From the sequence record ON529850.1: a DNA stretch of 64,000 nucleotides, one strand, 5' to 3'. How positions within the stretch are numbered: position 1 is the stretch's first letter; the number at the start of each line of letters is the position of its first letter. A model generated the notes under the pieces. That model made no database searches. It was not told the origin of the DNA and saw only the letters and a program-made list of their open reading frames with translations. The translations under genes were made by a program, and so were the position numbers. Shown here one piece after another: positions 42,291 through 48,853 of this stretch.

Positions 42291-42409
42291 GACATGCCGA
42301 CGATAGATAAGGAGGACTCCAAGGTCACGGTATAGAACCCCGCCGCGACAATGACGTCTTCCTCCACCTAGCAGGTTACTCTTCCGACTGTCAACACATT
42401 GCGTCAAAA

Positions 42410-42492
42410 TGGCGACGCGCCCCGGACTCGAACCGGGCCTCTCAACCTTCGGAGGGTTGCGCCTGACGATGATCCTGCTCGGCCTGCGCGTC
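42410..42492 (-). tRNA. tRNA-Arg(CCG) with enlarged 17-nt D-loop
   Basis: Acceptor GACGCGC/GCGCGUC, anticodon loop CUCCGAA, T-loop UUCGAGU, encoded CCA. Confidence 0.8.
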
Positions 42493-42509
42493 GTGTTTGA
42501 CAGAAAAGA

Positions 42510-42592
42510 TGGCGCCCTGGGTCTGATTCGAACAGACCTTCTCAACTCCTGCTACGGCTACTGGTTTCGTAGACCAGCCCGGTTACCAGGGC
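42510..42592 (-). tRNA. tRNA-Arg(ACG), D-armless with a 23-nt variable region
   Basis: Acceptor GCCCUGG/CCAGGGC, CUGGU-CUACGAA-ACCAG, GUCUG-UUCGAAU-CAGAC, CCA; only 8 nt where the D-arm should be. Confidence 0.7.
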
Positions 42593-42622
42593 GTGTTGAC
42601 GATCACACTTCGTCAGTATAAA

Positions 42623-42706
42623 TGGCTCTTGCGGTAGGACTCGAACCTACAAGCCTTTCGGCGCTCGCTTAACAGGCGAGTGCGGCTACCATTTCGCCAC
42701 GCAAGA
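42623..42706 (-). tRNA. tRNA-Asn(GUU) with a type II variable arm
   Basis: Loop CUGUUAA; arm GCC-GAAA-GGC; G73; CCA. Confidence 0.85.
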
Positions 42707-42718
42707 TCAAAGAAAAGT

Positions 42719-42792
42719 TGGTTCAGGGGGAAGGAATCGAACCCTCATTTGCCGGACCAAAACCGGACGTAATACCGTTATACCACCCCTGA
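42719..42792 (-). tRNA. tRNA-Gln(UUG)
   Basis: Loop UUUUGGU; UCAGGGG/CCCCUGA; CCA. Confidence 0.88.
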
Positions 42793-46256: not shown

Positions 46257-46375
46257 TGGAGCGGGTGGGAAGACTTGAACTTCCGCCTCCGGGTTAGCGA
46301 CCCGGCACTCCTGATCTCGGCCGAGACCCGCAACCCGGTTCGGCCGAACCTGCTGCGCCCTAGAGCTTCACCCGC
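46257..46375 (-). tRNA. 119-nt tRNA-like RNA: Gly-type acceptor, GCU (Ser) anticodon, 52-nt D-loop insertion
   Basis: GCGGGUG/CACCCGC, U73, CCA; CCGGG-UCGCUAA-CCCGG; GGAAG-UUCAAGU-CUUCC; short variable loop. Confidence 0.72.
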
Positions 46376-47193: not shown

Positions 47194-47278
47194 TGGCGGT
47201 GAACCAGGGAATCGAACCCTCAACCTTGCGGTCGGCTACGGTTTTCAAGGCCGCTTGTCCCCATGGACGCTGCTCACC
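47194..47278 (-). tRNA. tRNA-Ser(UGA), allo-tRNA-like D-arm and 4-bp T-stem
   Basis: Loop CUUGAAA; D-arm GUCC-AUGG-GGAC; AGGG-UUCGAUU-CCCU; CCA. Confidence 0.82.
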
Positions 47279-47285
47279 ATAAAGG

Positions 47286-47380: not shown

Positions 47381-47598
47381 TGGTGGAGGCGAGGGGATTC
47401 GAACCCCCGTAGACGCCGAACCCCCGCATTACCAGGGGCCGATCTTCGGTTTAGAACGCGTGTGCCGCTCTGACCATCTTCCGCAGGCCAGGTGGTCTAT
47501 CGTAACGACCCCGTCGATCGGTTGCCTCTGCGCCCCGGTTTTACCCGGACCGTTATCCTGTTCCACGGTGCTCATGCCGAAACCCGAGCGACGCCCCC
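47381..47598 (-). ncRNA. ssrA: Compact one-piece tmRNA-like RNA (218 nt)
   Basis: 5' GGGGGCG pairs with 3' CGCCUCC including G3.U70; A73; CCA; T-arm GGGG-UUCGAAU-CCCC; GGGUUUCGGC D-analogue; no anticodon arm. Confidence 0.78.
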
Positions 47599-48782: not shown

Positions 48783-48853
48783 TGGTGCCAAGAGTGGGAG
48801 TCAAACCCACCCTGAACCCCTACCACGGGCTCGTCCGGTCACCCGGCCTTGGC
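48783..48853 (-). tRNA. tRNA-Thr(GGU), atypical (mini D-arm, 6-bp anticodon stem)
   Basis: GCCAAGG/UCUUGGC; CCGG-GUGA-CCGG; GAGCCC-GUGGUAG-GGGUUC; 3-nt variable loop; CCA. Confidence 0.68.

Follow-up and report, generated by a model that had tools for sequence, protein, structure and literature searches.

RESULTS

A tRNA-like gene without a D arm in the Gurke tRNA cluster

The window, that is, the whole 64,000-nt stretch of record ON529850.1 that was analyzed, is from Brevundimonas phage vB_BpoS-Gurke, a 321.5-kb jumbo phage of the Dolichocephalovirinae. Its positions 42380 to 42720 match positions 228380 to 228720 of ON529850.1 with 100% identity. Within a large tRNA cluster, a tRNA-like RNA of 83 nt is encoded on the minus strand, from 42592 to 42510; all of the gene parts described below lie on this strand, and "nt" refers to positions counted along the RNA. 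The 5′ strand of the acceptor stem, GCCCUGG (nt 1 to 7, 42586 to 42592), pairs perfectly with the 3′ strand, CCAGGGC (42514 to 42520), which is followed by a discriminator G, the equivalent of G73, and a genome-encoded CCA (42510 to 42513). The anticodon arm (42561 to 42577) has the 5-bp stem CUGGU/ACCAG and the 7-nt loop CUACGAA, in which the anticodon ACG (42568 to 42570) is read directly, and the T arm (42521 to 42537), GUCUG-UUCGAAU-CAGAC, has a 5-bp stem and a canonical loop. The features of a canonical tRNA found here are thus a 7-bp acceptor stem with discriminator and CCA, a 5-bp anticodon stem with a 7-nt loop, U33, and a purine at 37, and a 5-bp T stem with a loop of the UUCRANY type. 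What is missing is a D-arm hairpin in the stretch from nt 9 to nt 26. The segment joining the acceptor stem to the anticodon stem, referred to here as the connector, has only 8 nt (UAACCGGG, 42585 to 42578, by direct reading of the strand), and 23 nt starting with UAGCCGUAGCAGGA (42560 to 42538) lie between the anticodon arm and the T arm.

An earlier reading made from the sequence alone had placed the three arms, the CCA, the 8-nt segment, and the 23-nt region exactly so, and direct reading of the minus strand agrees with it throughout. It had also likened the start of the 23-nt region to the D arm of the neighboring tRNA-Arg(CCG) gene (42492 to 42410, minus strand), which reads GGCCGAGCAGGA, and this likeness holds. 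The two genes have in common a D-loop motif (GCCG-N-AGCAGGA), the isotype, and the cluster, but the arm order of the neighbor is normal, its D arm, made up of a 3-bp stem (GCC/GGC) and a 17-nt loop, being on the 5′ side of the anticodon arm.

ARAGORN called 24 tRNAs in the window, none of them for Arg, and both the ACG gene and the neighboring CCG gene were missed. In Rfam searches, the ACG gene had no match to RF00005 even at an E value of ≤10, and its best match was a subthreshold one to tRNA-Sec, RF01852 (28.1 bits compared to a threshold of 47), so that both the gathering score and the tRNA-finder call of a canonical tRNA are lacking. The CCG neighbor scored 25 bits with RF00005, compared to a threshold of 29, and 27 bits with the model of the re-wired family described below. 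In the GenBank record, a 480-bp gap containing the two genes is without annotation. Promoter and terminator scans of the sequences flanking the ACG gene were uninformative.

Other tRNA-like sequences were noted on the minus strand of the window. An unannotated 71-nt gene at 48783 to 48853 has the anticodon loop GUGGUAG (anticodon GGU, Thr) on a 6-bp stem and a D hairpin, CCGG-GUGA-CCGG, that abuts the acceptor stem with no nt 8 and 9; its variable loop has 3 nt, and its T loop, UUUGACU, is without a GG partner. This layout is reminiscent of tRNA-Pyl. The gene at 47197 to 47279, also unannotated, is class II tRNA-like; its anticodon, UGA, is that of Ser, its D arm, GUCC-AUGG-GGAC, is short, it matches the Rfam tRNA-Sec model at 29.7 bits, and it would complete the serine set of the phage. 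The RF00005 match at 46260 to 46331 is weak (31.1 bits); its loop position 33 is C, and AUCAGGA lies in its long D loop. A tmRNA-like match at 47381 to 47598 scored 31.7 bits, below the threshold of 47.

The gene belongs to a widespread phage family

The Gurke gene belongs to a widespread, conserved phage tRNA-Arg family without a normal D arm. Searches with blastn found the gene in 33 cultured phage records, from Caulobacter and Brevundimonas phages of the Dolichocephalovirinae, the carriers including phiCbK, Karma, Magneto, Swift, Rogue, the Ccr phages, the BL phages, Colossus, PW, Kikimora, and Bajun; no annotation lay under the blastn match in any of the 33 records. Two copies are present in Bajun, one ACG and one CCG, and the ACG copy (L008:210-292) is annotated as tRNA-Arg in the record. 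In the phiCbK copy, the anticodon-stem and T-stem sequences differ from those of Gurke yet stay complementary. The phiCbK genome paper described this phage as having no Arg tRNA (PMC3556154); its genome holds the ACG gene (L009:202-284) and the CCG gene with the large D loop, both unannotated.

Some variation in the cultured phages is recorded here. The tRNA-Arg(CCG) gene that follows the ACG gene is conserved in phiCbK-like phages and is labeled tRNA-Arg in BL10 and PW and "tRNA-Pseudo/OTHER" in Colossus. The tRNA after the phiCbK Arg pair is labeled Gly, and its positional counterparts in Karma, Magneto, Rogue, and Ccr10 are labeled Arg. The copy in the Caulobacter phage RBC57 (L013:402-485) has an 8-nt anticodon loop (UUACGAGA) and the T loop UUCAAAU, and it is either decaying or a frameshift-prone variant.

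Further relatives were collected by pattern scans of IMG/VR and JGI metagenomes and then with a covariance model for which the 23 sequences collected first were used. Initial looser scans gave mostly chance matches among the matches listed, and tighter patterns were adopted. In total, 85 distinct sequences were obtained from contigs with a GC content of ~0.39 to 0.65, and the covariance model scored members at 50 to 100 bits and ordinary tRNAs at <30 bits. Because most members were retrieved with sequence patterns holding the motifs discussed below, the invariance of these motifs is inflated, partly by construction; sequences found by the model only (e.g., Kabachok, L101:177-258, and L256:5261-5342) display the same features as the pattern-found members. 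A search for the same architecture in related phages, as proposed in the sequence-only reading, yielded 33 phage records and dozens of environmental contigs, with compensatory changes among them, a recurrence far beyond what chance would give. Two environmental subtypes gave no blastn match in the cultured phages. A strict pattern run on one representative genome per bacterial and archaeal species returned no intact cellular copy, which leaves cellular absence unproven, and gave one truncated copy on a Coxiellaceae MAG contig and two chance matches. The truncated copies (L248:2058-2124, L247:2040-2106(-), and L266:3351-3417), on two viral/metagenome contigs and the Coxiellaceae MAG contig, are without the 5′ acceptor strand and the connector and sit directly 3′ of a 71-nt tRNA-Arg(UCU); such a copy may have arisen by decay or be left over from an integration.

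The connector is paired by three downstream segments

In four alignments of the family, standard pairs were found in 95 to 98% of the alignment cells compared to 63 to 66% in shuffles, and pairing fell to 33 to 50% in slid registers. The covariation score was 0.81 to 0.90 compared to 0.20 to 0.24 in shuffled alignments; many of the covarying cells of the family may come from few evolutionary events. Compensatory changes are seen in every helix. In the acceptor stem, all seven pairs have double compensatory changes and 98.7 to 99.5% of cells are paired; in the anticodon stem all five pairs covary, and in the T stem four of five. The T loop is canonical across the family, the GTTC and A58-like positions being conserved, and the anticodon loop has U33 in 84 of the 85 sequences and A37 in all 85. 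U8 (42585), also present in 85 of 85, is the sole unpaired nucleotide between the acceptor stem and the first connector helix.

The 8 nt in the place of the D arm are nearly all paired, and nt 9 to 15 form one continuous strand that is paired by three downstream segments, nt 33, nt 36 to 38, and nt 47 to 49. The pairing nearest the anticodon arm is that of G15 (42578) with nt 33, a U (42560), a 26:44-like pair closing the anticodon helix. It is formed in 67 of 82 sequences, and G.U, C-G, A-U, U.G, and U-A all occur. Nucleotide 33 is followed by the bulge A34 G35 (nt 33 to 35, 42558 to 42560, as placed by the four alignments), which has 2 nt in most members and 3 nt in a subgroup of 79-nt sequences. 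Next comes helix b, in which CGG (nt 12 to 14, 42579 to 42581) pairs with CCG (nt 36 to 38, 42555 to 42557). Its first pair, 12:38, is nearly constant (C-G 83, U-A 1), whereas 13:37 (G-C 69, C-G 8, A-U 4, U-A 2, G.U 1) and 14:36 (G-C 34, A-U 19, C-G 6, U-A 4, U.G 1) vary, and 14:36 is mismatched in 18 of 83 sequences (A.C 14, A.A 4). RNAalifold predicted this helix independently, and the single-sequence MFE fold contains it as well; it stands where a D stem would otherwise be stacked on the anticodon stem.

Helix a, the pairing of AAC (nt 9 to 11, 42582 to 42584) with GUU (nt 47 to 49, 42544 to 42546), was spotted by eye and then followed by a prospective scan in which C48 was fixed and nt 10, 11, and 47 were left free. 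Over all 85 sequences, 10:48 is A-U in 43, G-C in 25, and C-G, U-A, and G.U in 1 each, and 11:47 is C-G in 61, U-A in 13, U.G in 4, and A-U in 1. The partners returned by the scan were all complementary, with G at nt 10 throughout and 11:47 being U-A 12 times, C-G 10 times, U.G twice, and A-U once; one neighbor of the scan members has C10-G48 together with A11-U47. Since nt 9 to 11, 12 to 14, and 15 are all paired downstream, the 8-nt loop between nt 38 and nt 47 (UAGCAGGA) is a bulge held between two 3-bp helices. Helix a is followed by a 6-nt joiner, GAGAAG (nt 50 to 55, 42538 to 42543), that leads to the T stem.

In the 79-nt subgroup (L293:426-504(-), L306:4692-4770, L308:4893-4971(-), L287:5471-5549, and L288:1366-1444(-)), the GGAG motif is separated from the T stem by just 3 nt, CAU. 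Helix a of this subgroup is a single C-G pair; helix b, the loop, and an A:U pair of the 41:55 type (see below) are kept.

Inspection of the Gurke sequence by eye suggested other folds, such as one in which ACCG-GGC-UGGU forms a mini D hairpin and CUACG/CGUAG a stem, with an 11-nt loop; these were rejected because the loop CUACGAA, U33, and the covariation of the ACG stem fit the anticodon arm of the sequence-only reading. That reading had also foreseen that ARAGORN may miss such genes; besides leaving the Gurke gene uncalled, the program called 4 of 54 members, mostly with the wrong anticodon. When the loop segment was put back before the connector, 53 of the 54 were called with the right anticodon, a result that mostly reflects spacing, because a control with the segment shuffled was still called in 40 of 54.

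The displaced loop has the sequence of a D loop

The loop comprises nt 39 to 46 (42547 to 42554), with the consensus U-A-R-Y-N-G-G-A (UAGCWGGA) and with U39, A40, and G44 each found in 84 of 85 sequences. By position in the motif, A40 is A14-like, G41 is R15-like, G44 G45 are like G18 G19, and A46 is A20-like. The D-loop motif had been proposed to have moved to the 3′ side of the anticodon arm, and this part of the earlier proposal stands, the motif being conserved there; that the D hairpin moved with it as a unit does not.

Outside the helices, the top mutual-information pair is 41:55, in which G41 is matched with a 48-like nucleotide, nt 55, that directly precedes the T stem. The pair is A-U in 47 sequences, G-C in 23, G-G in 14, and A.C in 1, and both the A-U and the G-C states were found within single contigs. 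Such covariation is what a Levitt-type pair would show. In one member (L314), the second G of the GG (G45) is changed to A along with a T-loop C-to-U change, which is what is expected for a G19:C56 pair, seen here in a single case. From the motif conservation, the covariation of 41:55, and the joint change of G45 and the T loop, we infer that the displaced loop acts in the role of a D loop. The canonical D-loop path would not be fully kept if helices a and b are coaxial, because a single nucleotide, A46, lies between G45 and helix a, too little for the chain to return from a canonical elbow position.

Arginine anticodons and candidate identity positions in most members

Arg anticodons are present in 80 of the 85 sequences (ACG 38, UCU 24, UCG 12, CCG 3, CCU 2, and GCG 1), and the remaining 5 have UAU. 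One of the retrieval patterns left the anticodon free, and every intact member that it returned was Arg. Bacterial Arg identity depends on A20, C35, G/U36, and A/G73 (PMC9976931). Judged by position in the sequence, 80 of 85 members have both C35 and G/U36, and A follows GG in the Arg members. The GG-A motif singled out in the sequence-only reading is accordingly retained by the members with Arg anticodons, and the five UAU members have GGU. The discriminator is G in 33, A in 28, and U in 23 sequences across the family. In the UAU members, GGU and discriminator A match bacterial Ile determinants. A side branch with UAU, and in one case GAU, comprises L298:6155-6238(-), L274:11975-12058(-), L331:33-115, L340:3141-3223(-), L322:1260-1338(-), and L283:3904-3985, and is characterized by a shorter connector, UA(U/C)CG, by GGU in place of GGA, and by discriminator A. 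With these isoleucine-like features in the side branch, the architecture is not strictly confined to arginine.

Where canonical and unusual Arg tRNAs occur in one contig, their anticodons differ. For example, contig L065 has a canonical ACG and an unusual UCG, L101 has canonical GCG and CCU and unusual ACG and CCG, and L188 has a canonical CCG and unusual ACG and UCU. In the Gurke cluster, the ACG gene and the neighboring CCG gene are the only Arg tRNAs. Among the Arg codons of the window open reading frames, CGU, CGC, and CGA make up 72% and CGG makes up 20%, and the two genes would read ~92% of the Arg codons in the rough set used for this count, the long window open reading frames with high GC3. 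In Colossus and PW, a canonical tRNA-Arg(ACG) adjoins the unusual copy, which means that the latter is not always required for decoding. Overall, these patterns agree better with a role in decoding than with one as a decoy.

DISCUSSION

A probable working tRNA-Arg with a re-wired core

The secondary structure, conservation, covariation, restriction to Arg anticodons, and family distribution, all obtained directly, point to a working class of tRNA-Arg in which the core, or D region, is re-wired, and we consider this reading probable. On this basis we infer how such an RNA may fold in three dimensions, be processed and arginylated, and be used on the ribosome. A long helix of 5+1+3+3 layers would stand in place of the anticodon stem, the 26:44 pair, the D stem, and the tertiary layers. 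The D-loop sequence (A14, R15, Y16, N17, G18, G19, A20) would emerge from this helix as an 8-nt loop between the 3-bp helices, its GG would dock onto the canonical T loop, and its R15-like base would form a Levitt-type pair with the base directly before the T stem. The A20-like base, together with C35 and G/U36, would let the host ArgRS charge the RNA, whereas the parts met by RNase P, the CCA enzyme, EF-Tu, and TadA would all be canonical. The ACG anticodon is presumably deaminated to ICG. The phage would transcribe the gene within its tRNA cluster and, together with tRNA-Arg(CCG), use it to read most of its Arg codons.

Several other readings of the same data were weighed. If the displaced 23-nt region folded alone as a D-arm-like hairpin (UAGC/GUUG, loop WGGA) that offers GG-A to the T loop, the molecule would be a D-armless cloverleaf with a single-stranded connector, close to the "arm-shuffled cloverleaf" of the sequence-only reading. 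A 4-bp hairpin of this kind, 39-42:47-50, was indeed drawn by RNAalifold on the first 23 sequences and is found in the single-sequence MFE fold, and in most members G41 or A41 opposite U48 and C42 or U42 opposite G47 are pairable. However, in the first 54 members 41:48 is A.C in 7 and 42:47 is A.G or C.A in 6, whereas the complementarity of nt 47 and 48 to connector nt 11 and 10 is kept in every member with a joiner. With C48 fixed, nt 10 was G throughout and 11:47 alternated between C-G and U-A. The hairpin, the sole one possible, is gone from the RNAalifold consensus of the diverse alignment and is impossible in the 79-nt subgroup, where the joiner is only 3 nt, and the pairing of the connector with nt 36 to 38 has independent support. 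We therefore regard this fold as improbable, and the arm-shuffled cloverleaf is not upheld. Least credible of all is a decaying pseudogene or a functionless scar of rearrangement; a pseudogene, not processed or charged and not conserved, is what the sequence-only reading had named as the outcome that would count against it. The rejection by tRNA finders and by the Rfam tRNA model, the "tRNA-Pseudo" label of the neighboring gene in the Colossus record, and the truncated copy in three contigs could be taken in its favor, but the gene is conserved in 85 distinct sequences from very different phages, with 95 to 98% of helix cells paired and compensatory changes in every helix, the functional loop positions are invariant, and the anticodons are restricted to one amino acid.

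Two further readings accept a functional RNA and differ from the preferred one in what it does or how far its design goes. It might be a tRNA-like RNA outside translation, either a decoy or sponge for a tRNA-targeting defense nuclease, a tRNA-modifying enzyme, or ArgRS, or a regulatory mimic of tRNA-Arg. Phage tRNAs are known to counter tRNA-cleaving defenses (PMC10264068, PMC11555353), an unusual core might alter recognition by a nuclease, and the canonical tRNA-Arg(ACG) held alongside the unusual copy by Colossus and PW would be in keeping with such a role. Yet the family spans all six Arg anticodons, its members complement rather than duplicate the canonical Arg tRNAs of the same contig, and the acceptor stem, discriminator, CCA, U33, A37, and T loop, all needless in a decoy for an anticodon nuclease, are retained; the reading is unlikely on this evidence. 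Slightly better placed, and still doubtful, is the bolder proposal that these tRNAs are fully functional and attain the L shape by a different strand topology, a second natural solution for the core, and that they were selected as the re-wired D region evades host or phage enzymes that recognize or cleave canonical tRNA-Arg, with charging by ArgRS retained through the transplanted A20-type loop.

Comparison with known tRNA types

The arm order of the cloverleaf is among the most conserved features in biology. To our knowledge, its known exceptions are the loss of an arm, in mitochondria, or changed arm lengths, in tRNA-Sec and allo-tRNA. In class II tRNAs, which are the Leu, Ser, and Tyr isotypes in bacteria, the extra region forms its own stem-loop beside a normal D arm; in the phage RNA, the candidate hairpin clashes with the covariation, there is no D arm, and the anticodons are those of Arg. 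For a connector absorbed into the anticodon stem, the closest precedent is found in human mitochondria, where the D-armless tRNA-Ser(GCU) has an anticodon stem extended in this way and no tertiary core (PMC9427863). The mammalian mitochondrial tRNA-Ser(GCU/AGY) is without a D hairpin, and the phage equivalent of its pairing is that of nt 12 to 15 with nt 33 and 36 to 38. The absence of a D hairpin and the connector within an extended anticodon stem are thus found in both. The mitochondrial tRNA differs in that it lacks a GG motif, has a remodeled T loop, and requires a coevolved synthetase. In contrast, the D-loop/T-loop core appears not to have been lost in the phage family, which has a canonical T loop, a conserved GGA loop, U8- and A14-like bases, and a covarying Levitt-type pair (41:55), and which, in addition, has the extra helix 9-11:47-49, is borne by bacteriophages, and is largely arginine specific.

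Other types are more distant. In tRNA-Sec, a 6-bp D stem replaces the tertiary layers and the extra region is long (PMC7609411), and the 3+3 bp of the phage connector helices occupy the place of this D stem. However, the acceptor/T domain of tRNA-Sec is 13 bp long, its anticodon is UCA, and its D hairpin is normally placed, whereas the phage RNA has a 7/5 domain, Arg anticodons (ACG in Gurke), no hairpin, and a tRNA-Sec score well short of the Rfam threshold, as given above. The order of tRNA segments also departs from the canonical one in the circularly permuted tRNA genes of the red alga Cyanidioschyzon merolae, from which processing gives a canonical mature tRNA (PMC3978253). There the permutation is in the gene only, whereas the order of the phage RNA would persist in its mature form, and its 5′ and 3′ acceptor strands are at the normal ends of the gene. 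Allo-tRNAs with 8/4 or 9/3 acceptor/T branches were found by metagenome mining in bacteria and their phages (PMC5389517); their departure is in the acceptor/T branch and their D arm is a normal hairpin, the reverse of the phage family, in which the D region is re-wired. A 2020 review of noncanonical tRNAs makes no mention of phages or of any such arrangement. The sequence-only reading knew of no described tRNA of this kind, and word matching in open-access text, which covers few subscription journals, found none either. Most likely, then, the core is wired differently from that of every described tRNA, as far as the literature search reached.

Implications

Phage tRNA inventories are incomplete, a good example being phiCbK, with two Arg tRNAs compared to none reported (PMC3556154), and standard tRNA finders need a model for the re-wired class. 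In this family the D-loop sequence is retained, as are its partners in the T loop and in the Levitt-type pair, and what changes is the strands that hold it. If the preferred reading of a working, re-wired tRNA-Arg is true, the family would be a natural test bed for how ArgRS reads A20 and a possible scaffold for orthogonal tRNA design, and it would mean that a bacterial translation system can work with a tRNA whose core is re-wired.
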